Shown in pieces: positions 43,882 through 60,053 of a DNA stretch of 64,000 bases (its first letter is position 1; the number at the start of each line of letters is the position of its first letter). The translations under genes and the position numbers were made by a program. This DNA is from Salisapilia sapeloensis CBS 127946 (lineage: Eukaryota > Protista > Oomycota). The DNA is taken from assembly GCA_023334545.1 (NCBI GenBank), contig JAADVB010000023.1, positions 59,671-123,670 of the forward strand. The letters are read 5' to 3'. Below the pieces are notes generated by a model. The model had not been told where the DNA came from. It saw only the letters and a program-made list of their open reading frames with translations, and did no database searches.

Positions 43882-46212
43882 ATGGCCAATAGGGACAACG
43901 GACGAACGACTCCCGGAGGTTCCCACGCCAAGCCGGAGGAGGACGTGGCACTGCCTCCAGGATGGAAAAAGCGTGAGAGCAAGTCCCAGAAGGGCAAGTA
44001 CTATTTTATATCGCCCAGTGGAAAGACCCAGTGGGCGCCTCCATCCGTCAAGCGCAAGAAGAGTAAGTCGAGCCTTGTGCATGTTGAAACCGGTTTACTA
44101 ATATCTTGTCGTGGCCATTGTAGGCAACCAGACTTTTTCGTGGGTGCATTCCGTCGAGATCGAGTTCAGCGAGAAGCGTCTCGGTGTCAGTCTGCGAGAG
44201 GTGAAGCAGTCGCAGGAGACGCCATACCCTCTCTTCCAGGCAGAGGTGGATGACCTGCCCAAGGTCGGTGGAAAACCAGGTCCGGCAGAGCTTCACAATT
44301 GGAGCGTCAAGCCCCATCAGTACGTACTTGCCGGATATATGCTAGTTTATACGATGCTTATAAGGGTGGTAGACGACTGACGGTCGGAATGCGACTGGTG
44401 TCTCTGGATGGTGTCCAGCTGGCAGGAGACAGCTACGCCATGGTCGTGGAGAAGATCAAGAGTGCTTCGAGACCTCTCAAGATTGTCTTCGCCAACGCCA
44501 GTCGGGGCACATACGAAGATAATCCGGACGCTGTGCCTCCAGAGGAAGGAGATTTCCAGTCGTCGGACTTTAACTCCCACTCGTCGCTACGGTTCGACCC
44601 TGCCACGAAAGCCAAGCGAGACCTCGTGACTGTACTCGTGTCGGACGATTTAAGATCAGAGTTGTGGAAGATGGAGATGCGAAAGCTCCTTCGGCAGATT
44701 GGCCAGCGGCAGCAAAAGTACGCGGTCGTGTCGAAAGCGTACAACAGATTGAACAAGGACAGACTGGACTTGCGGAAGGAGAACGACAGGCTGCTGGTGG
44801 AGAAGCGCCAGTTTGAGCACACGATCCAACAGCTCAAGGAGCAGGAAAAGGAGGGCGACAACCCAGAGCTGAAGCGGGCGGACGAGCTGGGGAAGCGCAA
44901 TACAGAGCTCAAGGACGACATCTCCAAGATGACGAGCGGAAATAAGAGTCTGCAGAAGAAGCAGGAGGGTCTGGAGAAACAGTTGCAGGAGCTGCAGGCG
45001 CAGGTGGACGAGAAGATGGCGAGTGCAGAGGAAGACAGGAACGCAGACGACGAGTTCTTTGCGCTGGACCCCAAGATGACTCCCAAGAAGCAGTTGCACG
45101 CGATGAAGCGTAGGCGGAGGTTCATGGAAGACGAGCTGGCCAAGGAGCAAAAGAGGACGAGCAGAGTGCTAAAGGAGATGGAGCAGCTGAACAAGCACTT
45201 GTCCAATATGGACAAGGGCACGGACGGCAAGGCCGAGGAAGAGGAAGAGAACAAGAGCGAGAGCGTGGAAGAAAAGAAGGAAGGCAAGGCGGACAAGCCG
45301 GAGCAGTCTGCTAAGAAAGAGAAGCCAAAGACCAAGACCGAGGAACTGGAAGCCAAGATCCAGGAGCTGAGGCAGAGACAGAGAAAGGTAGTGGAGACGC
45401 TGAGTAAGGCAGCGCAGAACGGAGACCAGGCGCTGGCTCAGGACTGTCAGAAGAAGCGACATGCCATTAAGGAAGAGCTTCGGAACGCACAGGACGAACT
45501 GAACAACCTGAAGGGAGGAAAGGTCTCGTCGAGTAGCAGGCCAGCACCGAAGAAGGAAAAGCCCTCTTCTCAACCATCACCGTCGTCATCAGCGGTGGAG
45601 GCAAGCCCTAAACGGCCCCAGATGGCGTCGCCGAAGATGCGGAAGATGAGTTCCGTGAACGAGGCAGACGATCTAAATGTGGATCGGATGCCGACGCTGA
45701 CAGGGTTCTTGGAAAAGGGTCCGACTGAGTGGAGCAGCAAGAATCTCATTGGCAACATGAAGAAGATGAGAGGAGCTCGAGAGCGGTGGTGCGAAGTCAC
45801 GAGCGACGGGTACTTGAGGTACTACAAGCGCCGAGGAGACGCCGAGATTCGAGGAGAGATTGAACTGAACGACCCGAGCCTCGAGGTCGTGTGTCCCGAC
45901 GAGCGCAGGGGCACCGAGTTCATTCTTTCCACCAGCACGCAGCAGTCCCACTTTTTCACCAAGAACCCGCAGGAGCTGGCGCGGTGGGTCAAGACGCTGC
46001 GGAGTGCGCACCGGTACTTGATGCAGCAGCGAAAGAAGAAGGCCGGGACAAAAACAACAGAAGCGTTGAAGCGAAACACGAGCGGACCAAAGGAACAAGA
46101 ACAGGGCGCGTGGAAAAGTAAAGTGGAGTTCACAATGGATTCAGGCGAGGTGGACGACTTTGATGTACCGGAAGACGAGTCCATGTACGGTCGCGCGACG
46201 CTCGGATTTTAG
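43882..46212 (+). CDS. WW + PDZ-like + coiled-coil + PH domain scaffold protein; 3 exons
   Basis: Introns at 44063-44123 and 44320-44372 join three ORF-track fragments in frame. WW: LPPGWKKRES..YYFISPSGKTQWAPP. PDZ-like: RLGVSL..VGMRLVSLDG..VVEKIKSASRPLKIVF. PH: LTGFLEKG..RERWCEV..LRYYK..ELARWVKTLR. Confidence 0.85.
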
Positions 46213-46317
46213 TTTTTCTCGTAGATGTCTTTTCATTAACACCCTTTGTCTTACTTGGCAGTCCGTCCTAAGGAGGCAAGAAATTGGATTTGAATTTTCG
46301 TTTTCATTTCATGAAAT

Positions 46318-49300
46318 CTACAGCACAAAGTACTTACTCCGCTGCTCTTCGTCATTCGCAGGAGGAGTCGGCGTCGCACGAGCCACCTCCTGAGCACCAG
46401 GGAAGTAGCTCTGGCCGCCCTCCACTGCGTTTAACATACTCGAGTTGTCCTGCGACCTGCCTGTACTCGTGTACCCGTCCTCGCCATTGTGGCTGCTCGC
46501 CTTGCGGCTGCGACTCGATAGACGGTTGCCGTAGCGGTATCTCTGTGCAGCGCCTCTCGACGTCGGGTGCGTATCCGAGGCTTCGTTCACCACTCGATGA
46601 CTCAGCTTCTTGGTGAACTGCTGCAGCGCCAGCTGGCTGTCCTCCGACTTGGGCAGAGCTTCATCCGCCACCGAGTTGGTGCGCTCAACCGCCGGCGCGC
46701 CGATCTGCGCCGTCTTCGGTTCATGGCGCTTGCTCATGGCTAGCGGAGCGTCCTCTTCGTCGTCGGAAGACTCCTTCTGGTAGACCATCTCGTAGAAGAG
46801 GCCTCCTTTCTGGACCAACTGGTTATACTGGCCTTCCTCCGCGACGCGACCGTTGCTCAAGACGAGTATCTGGTCGGCGTTCAGCGCAGTAGACAGTCGG
46901 TGCGTGACACTGATGATCGTCATGTTCATCTTGCGACTCAGACGCTCCAGCGTGGCGACAATCGACGCCTCCGTCTCTGGATCCAAGGCACTTGTGGCTT
47001 CGTCAAGTAGCAACAGACTAGGTCGGCGACAGAGCGCCCGGGCGAGACAGACACGCTGCGCCTGACCTCCACTGAGACTGCAGGTGGCGTGTTGGCCGAT
47101 GACCGTCTCGAAGCCGTCCTTGAGGTCGTTGATAAAGGAGCACTCGGCCAATCGGGCAGCCTCTTCGCACTCAATGTTCGTGGCAGACAAATTGCCGTAT
47201 CGGATGTTGTCGTAAATAGTTCCGTTCAAGATACCTCCGTCCTGGAACACTACGGCCGTCTGGTCCATGAAGCTCGTCTTACTAAAGTTGAAGATGTCGT
47301 GACCGTCCAGTCGGATGCAGCCACCGTCGGCCTCCTCGAACTGCATCAAGCAAGCCAGAAGGGTACTTTTACCACATCCGGACGGACCGACGATGCACGT
47401 GTAGTTGCCTCGAGGGATGTTGGCAGACAATTCATTCAAAACGTAGTGATCGGACGTCTTGTCGTACTGGAACACGAGACGTTCGATACTCAAATGCTGC
47501 TGCATCTTGGGCAGGTCCGGCAGGTTCTTGTCTCCGTCGTCGTCGCCAGGCTGGTTCGTCAGTCCAACGATGATGTCATCAATACGCTGGAGACTGCTGG
47601 CGTTACCGATGGCAACACGCATGAAACCTCCAAGCACCGTGACGGGACTCGACACTCGGTTGAGAAGCGTGACGAAGCCAAAGAAGTTGCCACTGGAAAT
47701 CTCTCCCCGCCACACCTTCATCGCAAGAGAGGCCGTCATGATAGCTGTGAAGATGTACATAGCACTCTCAACGTAGATCTGGACGATGCTCGACCAGAAG
47801 TCCTTGCTGAACTGGTTCTTACGCAAAATGCTGCACGTTCGCTTGAAGCGCGTCATCAGAGGCTCCTGGATGGCGTAGGCACGCACGACCTTCTGACAGC
47901 CAATTGAGTTCTGGAACTCGGCCGCCACGTACGCGTTCTTGGATCCAAACTCTTTCGAGCGCTGGGCGGCGAAACCCTGCGGACCAGACGACAGGAGCAC
48001 AGCTGAGAAGGCAAAGGCCATGAGACCGATGCTGTAGTCCATGTATAGTGCGTATCCGAAACCAAAGATGACAGACACGAGGGGGTTAATTAAGTTCCAG
48101 AACACGGCTTGCCACAGAGCGTTGACACGAGCAACATCACTAGAGAACAAGTTGTTCAGGTCTCCCTCCGATCGCTCGGCAAAGAAAGACGTGCCTTGGT
48201 GGAGAATGATGTCCAGCAGCTTGCTCTGCATCCGCTCGGTCGCCTTACTGATCATTTTGGACTGGAAGTAGCCAATAGCATAGTTGCCGAGCACGAACGG
48301 CACACACAGTCCCAAGATGCCCAGGATGCCCATCTTGAGCATGCCCTCATCATGCTCCTTTTCCTCGAGCGTGTTGAAGGCCATCGTGATGGTGTCCATA
48401 AAGTATGACATAGCAGGGTTGATGGCTGCATTTACGCAGACGACGAGGAAGCAGAAGATCAGGTCGGCCGTCTGGTTGGACCAGTGCGACAGCGTCGATC
48501 GGACCACGTCGAAGATGCCGTACGCCATGTTGGACGCAGACGCATCGATATCACGCAAGTGGGCCAAGAACTCTGTCGCTGACAGCGTGTTCGGTCGGTA
48601 CTGGAGCGCCCTTTCGAGGAACATCATGAGCTCATCTCTCGTCATGTCACCTTCGTCTCGTCCACAGATAATGACAAGATCCGTCTCCATCATCTCGATC
48701 GCCAAGGCAGAGATGCCAGGAATACGAGTGAGCGACGAACGCAAGGACTCGATCGATACTCGGAAGTGGTCACCGTTCGCACGAAACTTGTGAAGCTTCT
48801 TGGAGAAAATTCGAGCGCGAGGTTTGAGGATGAGTCGGCAAGCCACGACGCACAGGTATACGAGGGAGAAGCAGTAGTCGAATGAGACTTTGTCCTTGTG
48901 TCCGTCCTCGTCTTCGTCCGTCGCCATCGTCAGGTGCTTGTCTCCGATAGCGTATCGGCAGCCGAGGACGGCGACGAGGATCAAGAGACATAGGAGATCT
49001 GCGATATTTGAGTGGGACCGGAAGAGAGCACCTCGCATGCCGAGCACACGTATGCACATGTCGACGAAGTAGCATAGCATGAGTCCGCTGCTGAAGTATC
49101 TGGATCCCTTTGCGGCAAACTCGTTAAAGTAGTCTTCCTTGGGGGAGAAGGAAACGGAGAGTAGCTGTATGAAAAAGTCGAGGAAGAGCGCAAAGGTTTC
49201 GCTGTAGTGCCATTTTCGGGAGTCGATGACGCGGAGATAGAAGAGTCGGTGGCCCTTGCCTGGGACAGCCGCGGAGCTCTTGATGGTGCGCGGGTCGGAG

Positions 49301-49449
49301 GCCTCCGGCAGGGGCCCTCCGATTTTGACGAAACCGTCCGGCTGCATGTTTTCAAAATTGGTCGCGTCGCCGCTCATGGTATAATCGGACACTGGACTCG
49401 GTTCGAGAGACCGAGCAGGCGCTTGGGAGTGTTGCATCCACGTACACAA
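46318..49449 (-). CDS. ABCB-type half-transporter with N-terminal voltage-sensor-like 4-TM domain and EF-hand-like segment
   Basis: Single uninterrupted ORF; the start may be the ATG at 49377. NBD motifs: GPSGCGKST, VVFQD, LSGGQAQR, LLLLDEATSALD and VTHRL. The ABC transmembrane domain precedes the NBD. The N-terminal segment YFVDMCIRVLGMRGALFRSHSNIADLL resembles the Ion_trans S2-S3 signature. Confidence 0.9.
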   Translation of the reverse strand: MCTWMQHSQAPARSLEPSPVSDYTMSGDATNFENMQPDGFVKIGGPLPEASDPRTIKSSAAVPGKGHRLFYLRVIDSRKWHYSETFALFLDFFIQLLSVSFSPKEDYFNEFAAKGSRYFSSGLMLCYFVDMCIRVLGMRGALFRSHSNIADLLCLLILVAVLGCRYAIGDKHLTMATDEDEDGHKDKVSFDYCFSLVYLCVVACRLILKPRARIFSKKLHKFRANGDHFRVSIESLRSSLTRIPGISALAIEMMETDLVIICGRDEGDMTRDELMMFLERALQYRPNTLSATEFLAHLRDIDASASNMAYGIFDVVRSTLSHWSNQTADLIFCFLVVCVNAAINPAMSYFMDTITMAFNTLEEKEHDEGMLKMGILGILGLCVPFVLGNYAIGYFQSKMISKATERMQSKLLDIILHQGTSFFAERSEGDLNNLFSSDVARVNALWQAVFWNLINPLVSVIFGFGYALYMDYSIGLMAFAFSAVLLSSGPQGFAAQRSKEFGSKNAYVAAEFQNSIGCQKVVRAYAIQEPLMTRFKRTCSILRKNQFSKDFWSSIVQIYVESAMYIFTAIMTASLAMKVWRGEISSGNFFGFVTLLNRVSSPVTVLGGFMRVAIGNASSLQRIDDIIVGLTNQPGDDDGDKNLPDLPKMQQHLSIERLVFQYDKTSDHYVLNELSANIPRGNYTCIVGPSGCGKSTLLACLMQFEEADGGCIRLDGHDIFNFSKTSFMDQTAVVFQDGGILNGTIYDNIRYGNLSATNIECEEAARLAECSFINDLKDGFETVIGQHATCSLSGGQAQRVCLARALCRRPSLLLLDEATSALDPETEASIVATLERLSRKMNMTIISVTHRLSTALNADQILVLSNGRVAEEGQYNQLVQKGGLFYEMVYQKESSDDEEDAPLAMSKRHEPKTAQIGAPAVERTNSVADEALPKSEDSQLALQQFTKKLSHRVVNEASDTHPTSRGAAQRYRYGNRLSSRSRKASSHNGEDGYTSTGRSQDNSSMLNAVEGGQSYFPGAQEVARATPTPPANDEEQRSKYFVL

Positions 49450-51737
49450 ATAGGGAGTGTAGTCAGGTGAAGAGACGACTACGACGTGGCTGCTATGGGC
49501 TGAAGGAGGTGGACGCAGTGCAAGATGAAAATTCGAGCCGCTTCCTCTTCCTCGCTGTCCCTATCACTTTGTATGTGGCACTATCGTTTTGCTGGCCAGA
49601 GGACGGCCAATCGGAGTCGCTCACTAGCACAATCGTGCGACCGAGTGAACCCTTTTCATCCACAAGCGAGACACACTAAAGTGGGACAAGACGGCCGTCG
49701 ACTTACAGATGAGAAACGCGATCGAGGCGTGGATGGGTACCGGCCACGCGTTAGTTGGAGCGTATAGTCTTTCAATCAGCATGCCGGAGTGATGGGAATA
49801 CATTTCTCAACAAACTCACGGTCTTGAATGCGCCAATTGACGGACCAGCCTTTTCGGAGCCACGTTTGCCGCCAAAAGGTGCGAGACAATTAACCTAGGT
49901 GGATGGGTGCTTTCGTCAGCCGCAGCTGGATTCCATTGCCGTGTTGACGTTTCTGCTAAGCGTCGCTATTTTGCACGCAAAACCAGTGAATTACAGCTTA
50001 GCGCATTCGTCGCACTGAACGTTCCCATAAAGCTCAGTCTTTCGGCCGCTTCTCCACTGTATCGAGGCCGTTTCGCCACGATGAAGTCGATGGATACTGC
50101 TTCGAACGCAATTCCCGCAACACATGGGATAGCTTGACAAGCCAGGATTTTTGAAAAAGTGCCCGTTTAGTTTATACTGTCATGTGTAATAGGTGCGGCG
50201 GTAGCTTTATGTTCGACGAGCGTACCGTGCAGGATCTACACGACTCCTAGCGTAATTGTGCGCGAGTTTGCGTCCCAGCTACTCGTCTCTCCATTGTGCG
50301 CTCATAAGCTAATCGACGTGTTGAACGGACACCTTGATATCTTGTAGACAGTCATGTTGCCTCCTATAGCTTATTATTCGTATCACATACGACGAGCGAT
50401 ACAACAGGACATCCGTGTCAAGCTTGCCCATATCGTGCCAGATCGCATCGAGAAGGCATTGGATGGCAGCGGACATTTGCTGTATTATAAAATCGGACAT
50501 GCAAAAGCGAGCAAAGGTGCCGCTACGCACACCCCAATTGTCAAAAATTAGGATACGTGCTATGGAGTGGACCGTGCCTCAAGTACTCAAGAGATGGACC
50601 GTGGCTCACGACGGAAAGGCAGAGATCAACTGCATCCGATTGTAGTACTTTTTGCAAAGAGAGCGCACGTCTATTTCCCGGAAGAAGCAAATGTAATCCA
50701 GACCGAATTTTGTTGTCAAGTAGTCGATGGCCCCAGGTTCCCGCGGATTAACCTTTCCCGAGACAGCTTGGACACACTTTCCTGCTTCACCAAGTTTGCA
50801 ATCTTGTTTCCAGCAATGCTCATGTCCACGTAGCGGTTCATCTGATGCTTACACGATAAAGCGCTGCTGGATTTCTTTAGTTGCGCACATACCGTACACC
50901 ATGGCTATTCATTCTTCCCGGTTTTATGTCGAGGTGGCAGCTCACGTTATCTGTGATTGTTAACACCTGCAGCTGCACTACGTGCACACATTCAATTGAC
51001 TGGATTTCTGTTCCTACAAGACACCGTTGGGAATCGACTCGAGGTACAAATTCTTGCTTGAGTTATATTCAACTACAGCGCTGAAAAATGAACATTCGGA
51101 CAGAATCCTTTAAGTAGAGCGATCGTGAAGCAAGGCGGTGTACTCTCGGACAGTTGCTGTGAACATCTTTTCTTGCTAAGATCCGCAAGATCTCGGTATG
51201 TTTTCTCCCTGGATCTAATCAAGAGGACGAGAATTTCCTTTCATTTCATGCTCAATTTTCCTTGATTTTTAAAGACGGTATTTCTGCAACGAACGCAGGT
51301 ATCTCTGGTGGCTGCACATTCATAAATCAACCCGGACGGTCATCAGGGCAAATAACAGTGCGCGATCATAAATTGCACAAATAGCCTGGCTGTAGTATCT
51401 TGCGTGTAGTACAACCTTGAGTGCAAAACAATCACTTTTGTTTTCAAACGTCAGGTGTCTTTATACGATTGTTCCTTTACTCATCGATTCCTGCAAGTGA
51501 GCACTTGCAACGTCGAGTGCGTTAAAACGCAGCAACCTTGGGCATATATTTTGCTGTACCTACATGGCTTCCCCTTGCCTCTATGGCCACTCAACTTCAC
51601 AAAAGATGGTTCTTTGTAAAAGTAGGTATGACTCTCTTGAAACCCGCATTTGCATGCGGCGTCAACGAGGGACCGCCACTAGTTTAATAAACAGTGCTCT
51701 GGCAAGAGGATCCGCAAGTTTTCTAAATGTGTTAATA

Positions 51738-57300: not shown

Positions 57301-60053
57301 TTGCTCTTCTTCTTCGACACGAGGGAAGTATCAAGAGACGCAAAGTACACCTGTCTGTCCAAGTCGTAGTCCACGAGAGTCAGCTCCTTCTCCAGACCTT
57401 CTTCCCAGCTGTCCGAGTCTGGTGCATCAGCCACAAGCACAGTGGCCTGCTCGTCACCCTTTGACATGGTAAACACGGCTCCGTACGGACGCACACCAAC
57501 AAACTCTGCCGTCTCCGTGCTGCCAATCGACCACGGGGACTCGACAGCGTACTGTTCTAGCATGGCGGTGGTGAAATGTGGAAGGGCACTGCCGTTGACA
57601 CCCGTCTGGAAGTTGTGGAAGCCGACAACCATCCGGTCGTTTTCAATCTTCTCCACTCGGCACAGAACAGTCTCACCAACTTCAAATCGGCCGTTGTCCA
57701 CCTCTGTCACGAACGAGTCACTGAGGTAGGCCTTTGGACACAGTGCTGCCGTGTCATTCAAAAACTTTACGAAAACGCCCTTGGTGGCGTTAATGGATGC
57801 CACGAAGCCTACAAGCAGCTGTCCCTTGGTCACATCACGGGTGCTCGACGGAACACGGAACGTCTCATCCTCTACGTGAGCGAGCAACAGAGGCTTGCGA
57901 GTCAGCGTTAAGAGTCCGTCTTGAGCCTGGGACAACACTAGCAGAGGACTGGGGATCTTGTCACCGGCATGAACCGTCTCGATGATAGACTCAACGAGCG
58001 CAGTTTGACGAGGAAAGTCTGTGACGTGTACGAATGGCAATACGGCTTCCAAACCATCCGCCGTCTGCAATCGGAATCGTGTGTTCTCAACGTCCGTGAC
58101 AGTCACCGTGTCGGCTTCAAGCATGGTGCCGATCAGCTCGGGATTGATTGCGTTTTTCGACGTAGACGTGCTAGCGGTGACATCGAAAGAGAGCACTAAA
58201 CGCTTTTTCACAGCATCGCATTTCGTCACACGTGCTTTGACGACTTGGTGCAAAGTGTACGCGTCTTCGATGCGGTCAACACCAGCAGCATGCAGCACAG
58301 CAGCGGGAACGAGTCCGAAAACGCCGTCGTAGAAAGTGACGAGAACACCGTATTCAGCAATTTTGGTGATCGTTCCTGTTGTGACCAGGCCCATGTGGGC
58401 ATCCTCGTACTTGCGCAGCACCGGGAGCTCGGATTCCATCAGCTGCTTCTTCATTGTCAACACGATCTTGCCGCTGTCTTCAATTTTCAGAACACGAGCG
58501 TCGACTTGACTGCCAACGTCATACTTGCCAGCCTTCTTCTTGCTCTTCTTCTCCTTGTGAAGCTTTACGGCCGGCGGCAAATGCGCAGTTGGCACCAGTC
58601 CTTTGACGCTGTCGCTGATTTCCAGCAGCATCCCAAAGGACTCGGACGCAAGAATCTTGCCGCTAACCTTTTGCCCAGCCTGTAGGTCGTTCGTGCGCAA
58701 GACTGTTTTCTCCAGCGTCGAAGGCTTGCAGCTTACAGCCAGCAGATTGTCAAAGGGAGAGAATCCGATGACTCGAGCGCGAACGTCCTGGCCGATCGTG
58801 AACTTCTTCTCAATCTTATCTACGTGCTTGTCGTCGACATTCGAAATGTGAACAAAGCCAGGAATGAACTGGTCCCAGTTGATGTTCTCGCCCTCCATCT
58901 CTTCGTCTTGCGTCGGAACGGCAGAACGGAGTGAAACCAACATACCAATGTTCGGGTCTAGTCGCTCCACCTTGGCTTGGTCGACAATATCGCCGACCTG
59001 CAGCTTGGGCTGCGTCACTTCAAGATGGACAATGTGTGGCGCCATAGACAATGCAATCTCTTTCTTGATGAGGTCGATGCTGATGACTCGAGCTCGACCT
59101 TTCATGCCTTTCTTGACTCGCCCACTCCAGTCGTGTGTTGCAGGGAAACTCATGTGACCTTGCTCGACAGTTGCCTGGAAGTAGGATAGGAAGTTGACCT
59201 TGAGACCGTTTGCCAGCACTTCTTCTACTCGGACGTTGAGAAGCATACCAGGTGACAAGGTATCGATTTTAAATTTGTCACCACGAGTGACTGCCTTCTC
59301 CGTTGCCTCACGAGAAACAGAGAGCGTCGCTGTGCGCGTGTACGAGTTCATGGTCTCTACTTTGGCAAAGAGCACTTGACCGACTTTCGCGTCAGACAGC
59401 TCTTTGCTCTGGATGAAGGCGTTCAGGTTGCGAATGCCAGTGGACACCACTGCTCCGTGATCTTCGATCGACGAAACACAACCGAAGAGAGTGAGCCCAC
59501 TCACAATTTCGCTGGCAGTGAGGTCACCTTGGACACGAGAGAGGCGAAGAGATAATTGTACATTCTTCTGACCACTCTGCTTGCCAGTGGACAGCACAGA
59601 ACAAGGCACAAATTGGCCGACGTGGAAAAGGTCAGACAAGGCAACCGATGTCTCTGCGTCTTTGCCCTTACCGGAATCTAATCTGGAGTGGAAGAGGTCG
59701 CTACACTCGGCTCTGGAGACGACGCCGACAAGTCGGTTTGGCAAACTGATACTGAGTTCTTCCGTGCCGACGTGACGAACGATACCTAGCAGTCGCACAC
59801 CGTCGACCAGACTTTTGAAGCTAGTAGCAACAGCCTTTTCTTCTTTAGGCTCGTTATTCTTCTTGATAGCTGTCCGTGGCTGTGAAAAGCCTGCCTTGTC
59901 ACTCTTGGTCGTCTTGGAGCGCTTGGCTGGGCGCTCTTCCGCTTCGACACTAGGTGCAACCGGTCTACGACCGAAGAGCGTTTCGGACGTTGCAGTGGAT
60001 GTTGCCGACCGTTTGCCGGTAGCGGCGTCTTGTCCACCTCGTGGAAAGCTCAT
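54378..60053 (-). CDS. RRP5: rRNA biogenesis protein RRP5 (multiple S1 repeats + C-terminal HAT/TPR repeats)
   Basis: Starts MSFPRGG at 60053. Repeated S1 motifs (e.g. VKGHITSIKPYGVFVKI), an acidic linker, then PETSADYERRLAVSPHSSFLWIQYMAF, REKLNVWLAYLNLE, KRLDLWNVYLDKE and KKMKSLFKKYLAFE. Confidence 0.95.
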   Translation of the reverse strand: MSFPRGGQDAATGKRSATSTATSETLFGRRPVAPSVEAEERPAKRSKTTKSDKAGFSQPRTAIKKNNEPKEEKAVATSFKSLVDGVRLLGIVRHVGTEELSISLPNRLVGVVSRAECSDLFHSRLDSGKGKDAETSVALSDLFHVGQFVPCSVLSTGKQSGQKNVQLSLRLSRVQGDLTASEIVSGLTLFGCVSSIEDHGAVVSTGIRNLNAFIQSKELSDAKVGQVLFAKVETMNSYTRTATLSVSREATEKAVTRGDKFKIDTLSPGMLLNVRVEEVLANGLKVNFLSYFQATVEQGHMSFPATHDWSGRVKKGMKGRARVISIDLIKKEIALSMAPHIVHLEVTQPKLQVGDIVDQAKVERLDPNIGMLVSLRSAVPTQDEEMEGENINWDQFIPGFVHISNVDDKHVDKIEKKFTIGQDVRARVIGFSPFDNLLAVSCKPSTLEKTVLRTNDLQAGQKVSGKILASESFGMLLEISDSVKGLVPTAHLPPAVKLHKEKKSKKKAGKYDVGSQVDARVLKIEDSGKIVLTMKKQLMESELPVLRKYEDAHMGLVTTGTITKIAEYGVLVTFYDGVFGLVPAAVLHAAGVDRIEDAYTLHQVVKARVTKCDAVKKRLVLSFDVTASTSTSKNAINPELIGTMLEADTVTVTDVENTRFRLQTADGLEAVLPFVHVTDFPRQTALVESIIETVHAGDKIPSPLLVLSQAQDGLLTLTRKPLLLAHVEDETFRVPSSTRDVTKGQLLVGFVASINATKGVFVKFLNDTAALCPKAYLSDSFVTEVDNGRFEVGETVLCRVEKIENDRMVVGFHNFQTGVNGSALPHFTTAMLEQYAVESPWSIGSTETAEFVGVRPYGAVFTMSKGDEQATVLVADAPDSDSWEEGLEKELTLVDYDLDRQVYFASLDTSLVSKKKSKTRLKKDSSVSNATVVAINSTQKLATVVFQRSSKKPENRLAIVGAADLWRPADSTETLELEVGAEIPACRVLDPSMNIPNSPFNALPLLTVDRETSKNAKKARGSAALQEDWEQLPEYSSDDLSVGKLVEGRILSIMESFMDVKLKTDDSCGTVNSRVSIVDADPVPGKSHPFDAYSANSRVKARILAIQQKGVKEQLPVSESNPPRYQFIALSIKKEEVAKEKISAKKLVRPDWAEGSAGRKLLQPGKRVSGVVVEHATGGFLVRLSHCVTGFLSALEVAEEYEQIVKHKEDFPIGTRVEASVVHVDDDRKSVELSLVRSSELQVEVGQTVVGRIAKKRTPVAAPSVMVQLAADVYARVCITELRTPSKWSNEMLAEVQDGAFVRAVIVAKASGNQIDASLREDALADPEAYVAAQQEKQAPKAGDLVPAVVVSTSASGCFLRLNRVLSGRVMLRELSDDFVHNPESEFAPGKIVAGRVVKATDKGVELSLKASVVSQDANALKLQDLKVGMTVKGHITSIKPYGVFVKIDKTALSGLAHISEISDEKVDDLETLFSAGDYVKAKVIKIEGRKLGFGLKPSYFEGEDSSDEESEDEDMEEEASDEEAEEEASEEEVEEEDVPMAAKSEAMELGNDSDSDEDTSGEENSTKNAQFTWDGFANVLDEQDDSESSDEEEEEEVSAPASKKKNDEWVILREKAIAKGEDVPETSADYERRLAVSPHSSFLWIQYMAFHVSLTETDLARDVAKRATSTVSFREEREKLNVWLAYLNLEHDFGDDESFRRVFNDALRVNNPKHVYLHLVDLYDRSNELEDAMNTTKTMQKKFRKSKQTWKRTIQLQVKHEQKDEAALTLQRSLKSLPKHKHLPVILAYGQLLYENDDVEKARTVFEGIVSTYPKRLDLWNVYLDKEIKFADDTGSVRSLFERLLAMEFAPKKMKSLFKKYLAFEHKHGDEQSVAHVKQLAQEFVEQATA

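Follow-up and report, generated by a model that had tools for sequence, protein, structure and literature searches.

Can a voltage-sensor domain (VSD) be built onto an ATP-driven pump? The question is raised by a locus in a 64,000-nucleotide stretch of DNA (hereafter the window) from the oomycete Salisapilia sapeloensis CBS 127946 (assembly GCA_023334545.1, contig JAADVB010000023.1, forward-strand positions 59,671 to 123,670), whose minus strand holds an uninterrupted open reading frame (ORF) of 1043 codons at 46318-49449. An initial annotation, made from the letters of the DNA alone, took this ORF for an ATP-binding cassette (ABC) half transporter that is preceded by a four-helix, VSD-like membrane module and by an EF-hand-like segment. 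Here we establish that the four-helix module is a divergent but genuine VSD homologue and that it is encoded together with the ABC core by one gene and one transcript. The EF-hand did not survive our searches, and the role that the VSD may play for the exporter is weighed below against the other readings that the locus allows.

A voltage-sensor homologue ahead of an ABC exporter core

The genome from 46337 to 49592, to 49660 or beyond is matched collinearly by RNA contigs of three runs of the same organism, and none of these contigs has a joint inside the ORF, so that VSD and ABC core are continuous in each; a transcript of a related organism (95-99% identity) spans the same region. This establishes that both parts belong to a single gene and a single transcript. 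As for the exporter itself, Pfam finds ABC_membrane (PF00664) at residues 330-602 (E 1.6e-29) and ABC_tran (PF00005) at residues 671-820 (E 2.2e-28), and our motif check bears out the complete ABCB-type core of the initial annotation, since Walker A (GPSGCGKST), Q-loop, LSGGQ signature, Walker B (LLLLDE, with the catalytic Glu), D-loop (SALD) and the H-loop His are all intact. The closest solved relatives in the PDB are the halves of ABCB1, ABCB4 and ABCB11, followed by MsbA and ABCB6. Judged by this order of domains, a six-helix transmembrane domain (TMD) and then one nucleotide-binding domain (NBD), the protein is an ABCB-type (type IV) half transporter, and by analogy with other half transporters of the ABCB family, it would be expected to work as a homodimer in ATP-driven export. 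Its ABC core forms a clade of its own with members that are 38-83% identical to it, the next relatives being ABCB1-like full transporters at 28-31%. At the entrance to the TMD, a pre-TM1 segment (residues 313-335) with invariant Ser, Thr, His, Trp and Gln probably represents the elbow helix of the exporter.

The elements by which the membrane module had been recognised could all be placed on the protein: FALFLDFF of S1 at residues 86-93, CYFVDMCIR of S2 at residues 126-134, LFRSHSNIADLL at the S3 side at residues 142-153, the acidic loop DEDEDGHKD at residues 178-186 and the basic helix RLILKPRARIFSKKLHKFR at residues 205-223, while the supposed EF-hand segment, CGRDEGDMTRDELMMFL, occupies residues 262-278. 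That the module is, as had been proposed, VSD-like and not an ordinary TMD0 is upheld by sequence profiles and by fold. In a Pfam scan, Ion_trans (PF00520; gathering cut-off, 25 bits) matches 24 of 38 orthologue N-termini and any other family matches one orthologue at most. Above the cut-off are the Aphanomyces paralogues P0032 (33.0 bits) and P0099 (32.9 bits, scored full-length), the latter of which also carries ABC_membrane and ABC_tran and already has PF00520 in its public precomputed annotation. A profile built from the 38 orthologue N-termini and run against all PDB sequences retrieved nearly only VSD proteins, albeit with marginal E-values. With Saprolegniales paralogues added, the resulting broader family profile (A3) matched NavPaS at E 4.4e-6 (all four VSD repeats, two of them significantly), the VSD of SLC9C1 at E 5e-5 and NavAb/CavAb at about 1e-3, and its best 60 PDB matches were all VSD proteins. 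In these alignments S1-S3 are in register: Y-x-x-D-x3-R in S2 of the family falls on the aromatic, the acid and the base of NavAb S2 (which we take to be F56, E59 and R63), and F-R-S-x-x-N-x-x-D in S3 falls on the W-x-x-F-D motif. A single-sequence phmmer search of the PDB with the best Ion_trans-scoring member gave no match, and a feature search of the ESM Atlas returned Ion_trans-type clusters with scores (0.72-0.84) below the reliable level of the tool, which we take as a lead only.

The predicted fold points in the same direction. In an AlphaFold model of residues 62-335 (pLDDT, the predicted local distance difference test, 80), S0 is short, the four helices after it are long and the S3-S4 loop includes a hairpin. 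With Foldseek, nearly all of the top 50 matches are VSD or VSD-like, and the best ones in PDB and Swiss-Prot are VSD proteins, including a Nav1.7-VSD4/NavAb chimera (E 2e-3), Ci-VSP (template-modelling (TM) score 0.71; 15-19% identity) and TPTE and TPTE2 (root-mean-square deviation (rmsd) 4-5 Å over 150-164 residues). VIA-align superposes the model on NALCN DIV, Nav1.7 VSD4, Ci-VSP, NavMs, TPC2 and SLC9C1 at Z 12-13 and rmsd 2.0-2.5 Å over 106-130 residues. A shape search of the ESM Atlas with the VSD model gave matches with a TM score below 0.5 only, from unrelated families. Loop charges of -2 (S1-S2), +2 (S2-S3), -5 (S3-S4) and +8 after S4 (residues 205-226) fit a topology with the N-terminus inside, by which the end of S4 and the segment linking it to the exporter come to lie in the cytosol, where the N-terminus of the exporter must be. 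An ordinary TMD0 was considered and rejected: among the sequence and fold matches to the module there is no TMD0-bearing ABC chain of the TAP, ABCB9, ABCB6 or ABCC kind.

What the module may do for the exporter

Residue conservation was counted over 30 diverse family members. D91 of S1 is kept in 29 of them; in S2, Tyr occupies position 127 in 23 members, Asp or Glu position 130 in all and Arg position 134 in 29; and S3 has D151 in every member and R165, at its outer end, in 29. The charge-transfer centre residues Y127, D130 and D151 align with the aromatic and the acid of NavAb S2 and with the Asp of its S3. S4 is another matter. Its outer half is wholly hydrophobic and its membrane part has a single Arg, R205, this position being Arg in 25 members, His in four and Lys in one. 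Further basic residues follow R205 at +4, +6, +8, +12 and +13, with a Pro at +5 (K209-P210-R211-A-R213-x-F-S-K217-K218-L-H220), and the stretch L-K-P-R-A-R-x-F-S-K-K-L-H is almost invariant (K209, 29/30; P210, 25/30; R213, 28/30). Nowhere within the membrane does S4 carry three or more Arg or Lys residues at every third position. The reservation of the initial annotation, that an S4 with so few arginines makes real voltage sensing uncertain, was thus justified: there is one Arg in the membrane, the spacing is four and S4 does not align to a canonical S4. The countercharge side of the voltage sensor is intact while its gating-charge side is down to roughly one Arg and one Lys. Judged by where the structural alignments end, R205 comes close to R3 of Ci-VSP or R5 of Nav1.7 VSD4, which is a rough estimate, and going by these ranges it is probably located within the charge-transfer centre or slightly below it.

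The loop that leads into S4 differs between lineages. In S. sapeloensis it has an acidic, His-containing insertion of ~19 residues (…TDEDEDGHKDK…) which is found in this lineage only and is kept in the mRNA and in the transcript of the relative; orthologues from Phytophthora, Pythium and Albugo lack it. In Saprolegniales the S3-S4 loop is a different one, ~30 residues long and marked by the conserved pattern G-W-T-N…N-Q-x-E-x-Y.

Between S4 and the exporter lies a cytosolic segment (residues 227-312) that is the most conserved part of the whole protein, with 84% identity to Peronosporales and Pythiales and 65% to Saprolegniales, which equals the NBD. Modelled on its own by AlphaFold, it is predicted with confidence to fold (pLDDT 77). 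It has no significant sequence match in Pfam or the PDB and no significant fold match in the PDB or among AlphaFold clusters, and a Foldseek-independent fold search of 48,161 chains gave a best Z of 6.0, to unrelated proteins other than EF-hands. We treat this linker as a family-specific domain that may couple S4 to the exporter.

On balance, and with somewhat more confidence than doubt, we lean towards the view that the N-terminal domain is a VSD-derived regulatory module which, from its sequence and model, would have weak voltage or lipid sensitivity and would not be a classical steep sensor. In such a module, the charge-transfer centre and the Arg/Lys pair could either hold S4 in place or let it move by one or two 'clicks', and the 37-residue S4 would continue through the polybasic cytosolic helix and the linker domain as far as the exporter's elbow ahead of TM1. 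Slight shifts of S4 could then bias the inward- or outward-facing state or the ATPase cycle, as the long S4 of SLC9C1 does for its transporter, and they may be driven by membrane potential, by anionic lipid bound to K-P-R-A-R-x-F-S-K-K or by protonation of the acidic network. With no more than one Arg and one Lys to pass through the centre, voltage dependence, if there is any, should be shallow, at what we estimate to be roughly one or two charges per domain. That the position of S4 is transmitted to the transport cycle is suggested by the long S4, the polybasic stretch, a domain as conserved as the NBD and the pre-TM1 segment which adjoins it. Voltage-sensing phosphatases (VSPs) bind phosphoinositides through a linker which the polybasic stretch after S4 resembles, and so an anionic lipid could serve as signal or cofactor.

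Several points weigh against the idea of a VSD-derived regulatory module. The N-terminus of the window's protein scores 15.5-15.9 bits against Ion_trans (15.5 bits, E 0.01 and profile positions 4-85 when scanned alone), which is below the Pfam cut-off. No profile search aligned its S4 to a canonical S4, the basic residues in S4 are spaced by four rather than three, position 210 is Pro and four paralogues have His at 205. In addition, alignment ranges are the sole basis for the placement of R205, and that the linker provides the coupling is conjecture on our part. Finally, de novo four-helix bundles also reach Z 12-13 with VIA-align; because designed bundles score equally well, the fold backs the sequence evidence but is not by itself diagnostic of homology.

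An account without any sensing would see the module as a VSD fossil that serves as a TMD0-like accessory domain in trafficking, dimer assembly or partner binding and whose internal charges are retained only since the bundle needs them to fold. We judge this somewhat unlikely, albeit not without merit. Such roles are established for the extra N-terminal membrane domains of TAP1/2, ABCB9 and ABCB6, the charge-poor S4 that cannot be aligned to a canonical one would be at home in a fossil, and S1-S3 are the least conserved structured part of the protein (36% identity to Saprolegniales, as opposed to 58-65% for ABC core and linker). However, it sits poorly with the near invariance of the charge-transfer-centre residues and of the Arg and Lys in S4, which extends to old paralogues, and with an S4 extension and a linker that are conserved like the NBD and so suggest a coupled function; nor is any known TMD0 among the sequence or fold matches.

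At the other extreme, the protein may be a genuine voltage-gated ABC exporter, in which S4 crosses the field and membrane potential switches ATP-driven export. Zoospores respond to electric fields, an orthologue is abundant in their membranes (see below), three countercharge positions and the aromatic cap are intact, S4 has its conserved Arg and Lys, and its long extension resembles the one in SLC9C1, a protein whose VSD ranks with the best matches by sequence and by fold. With one Arg in the membrane, no every-third pattern, a Pro at 210 that interrupts the helix and His in some paralogues, full voltage gating nevertheless strikes us as distinctly doubtful. We put forward with similar reserve, and as an unlikely prospect, that the oomycete protein could be the first primary active (ATP-driven) transporter to be directly gated by a VSD: two VSDs per homodimer, each with R205 and K209 moving through the conserved charge-transfer centre, would use the long S4 and the new coupling domain to switch export by membrane potential in zoospores and hyphae.

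It is very improbable that an EF-hand makes the exporter responsive to Ca2+ or that the VSD provides a proton pathway of the Hv1 kind. The loop C-G-R-D-E-G-D-M-T-R-D-E inside the linker domain, on which the EF-hand had been based, does retain Gly6, a hydrophobic position 8 and Glu12, and EF-hand proteins occur among the weak fold matches of the linker, although these matches (recoverin, Z 4.9) are below the noise level stated for the tool and no linker match exceeds Z 6.0. Its positions 1, 3 and 5, however, are Cys, Arg and Glu, and canonical Ca2+ binding is excluded by the Cys and the Arg at positions 1 and 3, which like the Gly are invariant across 38 sequences. EF-hand hidden Markov models (HMMs) found nothing in the window's segment and gave EF-hand_8 in just two of the 38 members (E 0.12), and the linker profile search against the PDB returned no EF-hand proteins. 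Without a significant HMM, PDB-profile or fold match and with the wrong residues at ligand positions, the EF-hand of the initial annotation is not supported, and we reject it. As regards protons, the mid-membrane Asp in S1 recalls D112 of Hv1 and D129 of Ci-VSP; an Hv1-like channel was rejected on account of S4, which reads ...V-A-C-R-L-I-L-K-P-R-A-R... and lacks the R-x-W-R-x-x-R of Hv1.

That two adjacent genes, or a region with introns, have merely been misread as one ORF has nothing in its favour other than the general risk of ORF reading in raw eukaryotic DNA and is effectively refuted by RNA contigs from three runs that are collinear over the ORF without internal joints, by the prediction of the same module and ABC core in dozens of oomycete genomes and by proteomic detection of a 1012-residue orthologue.

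Distribution in oomycetes and comparison with known systems

When the N-terminal region was used in a word-indexed search, 45 proteins of ~1000 residues came up, and all those whose source is named are oomycete. Among 1.84 billion cluster representatives, an exhaustive profile search gave only 26 matches at E <=1e-3; every full-length one carries ABC domains, and the named ones that were looked up are all from oomycetes. Outside ABC proteins the module did not turn up, the exhaustive HMM search returning family members and short fragments only. These homologue searches show that the fusion is conserved across oomycetes: it is present in every order sampled, with one clear orthologue each in Peronosporales, Pythiales and Albugo among the matches and many paralogues in Saprolegniales, and purifying selection acts domain by domain across the protein. 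Annotations call the orthologues 'half transporter ABCB family' (P. sojae), 'ABCB6' or hypothetical. In P. parasitica, the orthologue PPTG_09717 (1012 residues) is part of the zoospore membrane proteome, where 30 unique peptides identify it; replicates of cell-body membranes gave 45-101 spectra and flagellar replicates 24-50 (cell body to flagella, 1:0.19), and the protein was classed simply as an ABC transporter (PMC12223298). PPTG_09717 is abundant in zoospore membranes.

Two members of the family, P0114 (L001:64-3054) and P0115 (L004:3001-5988), are more distant, with ABC cores at 38-41% identity. The N-terminus of P0114 is VSD-like, its S4 contains one Arg, and ~220 additional residues precede the exporter; P0115 keeps the motif R-L-L-V-R-P-S-A-R but has lost the Asp of S3.

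VSDs are known to control pores, a lipid phosphatase, a proton path and, as the one case of a secondary transporter, SLC9C1. An ABC pump would add a new class of effector to this list and would link the electrical state of the membrane to ATP-driven export, in a family that public records label merely as a generic ABCB half transporter. Conserved throughout the oomycetes and abundant in zoospore membranes, it probably has a part in the biology of important plant and animal pathogens. Even with voltage sensing lost, the family would offer a natural example of a transporter that has taken on a VSD as accessory domain, and it brings with it an unclassified, highly conserved coupling domain. The initial annotation knew of no characterised VSD-ABC fusion, and in line with this we found no description of the architecture in the literature on voltage sensors, ABC transporters and oomycetes or Phytophthora, which is not proof of absence elsewhere. 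A 2024 review lists as VSD-bearing classes channels, Hv1, TMEM266, voltage-sensing phosphatases and SLC9C1, the latter as the only transporter, and ABC proteins are not mentioned (PMC13095418).

SLC9C1 comes close to the oomycete protein in that a VSD is covalently fused to a transporter and a long S4 continues into cytosolic helices that control it, and its VSD is among the best matches (profile E 5e-5; fold 8pd2, Z 12.1). It differs in being a secondary transporter rather than an ABC pump, in carrying the VSD C-terminal to the transport domain, in the canonical basic run of its S4, for which gating charge has been measured, and in having a CNBD (cyclic-nucleotide-binding domain) in place of the linker domain. 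Ci-VSP, TPTE and TPTE2, which are the best per-domain fold matches, share the N-terminal position of the VSD before a cytosolic effector, the S1 Asp and a polybasic stretch directly after S4; their effector, however, is a PTEN-like phosphatase and no transporter, and their S4 bears four to five arginines spaced three residues apart. With the VSDs of Ion_trans channels (NavAb, NavPaS, NALCN, TPC, CatSper) the module has in common the register of S1-S3, the S2 motif and the S3 Asp, whereas no S5-S6 pore follows its S4, which is charge-poor and cannot be aligned to theirs. TMD0 domains (TAP1/2, ABCB9/TAPL, ABCB6, ABCC/SUR) likewise are extra membrane domains N-terminal to an exporter core, but no sequence or fold similarity to them was detected and they are not VSD homologues. 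Fusions of a VSD to a cyclase in alveolates and stramenopiles, such as PPTG_13136 of P. parasitica, also combine an Ion_trans-type S1-S4 with an effector that is not a channel, yet this effector is a guanylyl or adenylyl cyclase, their S4 motifs are typical and they form a different gene family (PMC12223298).

Gene model and features of the locus

Table 1. Features of the VSD-ABC gene, in window coordinates and in the order of transcription.
Feature	Position	Strand	Residues	Details	Basis
5' untranslated region	49438..49660	-			RNA contig ends at 49592 and 49660 (two runs)
Coding sequence, unspliced	46318..49437	-		first ATG to in-frame stop, 1039 codons; VSD, linker domain, ABCB-type TMD, NBD, tail	ORF, orthologue start alignment, RNA contigs
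N-terminal cytosolic motif	49279..49335	-	39-57	GFVKIGGPLP-x-SDPRTIK	alignment
S0, pre-S1 amphipathic helix	49222..49257	-	65-76	conserved L-x-x-I-D-S-R-K-W-H-Y	AlphaFold (AF2) helix 4-15, conservation
S1	49147..49218	-	78-101	mid-membrane D91	model, conservation, charge
S2	49018..49119	-	111-144	Y127-x-x-D130-x3-R134	HMMER alignments, conservation
S3	48949..49014	-	146-167	D151 in F-R-S-x-x-N-I-x-D-L; R165 at outer end	alignments, conservation
S3-S4 external loop	48883..48948	-	168-189	net charge -5	alignments, RNA
S4 and cytosolic extension	48772..48882	-	190-226	one 37-residue helix in model	AF2, conservation, charge
Family-specific cytosolic helical domain (linker)	48514..48771	-	227-312	~90 residues	conservation, AF2
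'EF-hand-like' loop	48616-48666	-		inside linker domain; EF-hand rejected
Pre-TM1 segment	48445..48513	-	313-335	D-V-V-R-S-T-L-x-H-W-S-x-Q	conservation, adjoins ABC_membrane start
ABC exporter TMD	47644..48462	-	330-602	six TM helices	Pfam and PDB matches
NBD	46765..47439	-	671-895	all catalytic motifs	Pfam, PDB, motif check
Walker A	47362-47388	-
Q-loop	47236-47253	-
LSGGQ signature	47062-47076	-
Walker B	46996-47016	-
D-loop	46981-46992	-
H-loop	46894-46908	-
C-terminal tail	46321..46764	-	896-1043	poorly conserved, probably disordered	conservation
Intron	46268-46337	-		70 nt, GT..AG	RNA contigs, three runs of same organism and one of relative

The TTG at 49449 with which the ORF opens is an artefact of the bacterial ORF caller, and the first ATG, at 49437, aligns with M1 of the orthologues and has in-frame stops upstream of it. 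Within the N-terminal cytosolic part, the GFVKIGGPLP motif is kept in orthologues from Peronosporales and Pythiales. Another ATG further upstream, at 49659 (49657-49659, minus strand), is in frame with the main one and followed by stop codons, and either opens a short ORF ahead of the main one or sits just beyond the start of the transcript.

At the 3' end, identity in the tail is 39% and 21%, and the tail closes with (S/N)KYFVL (46321-46338). The intron listed in Table 1 is the sole joint in the RNA contigs, its donor being formed by the codons for S-K-Y, and splicing swaps the last six codons and the stop (SKYFVL-stop) for RRTAK-stop, with the new stop ending at 46251. As the unspliced end KYFVL is kept in 21 of 22 listed orthologues from Peronosporales and Pythiales (Albugo has RYYML), the unspliced reading must also be functional somewhere, and the spliced and retained C-terminal forms may be alternatives. 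Either form leaves the finding of a VSD-ABC gene unaffected.

Across 45300-46340, RNA contigs run unbroken from a convergent neighbour on the plus strand (ORF end, 46212) into the VSD-ABC gene. With the stop of the latter at 46318, or at 46251 when spliced, the 3' ends of the two genes come within ~40-105 bases of each other, and their untranslated regions probably overlap.

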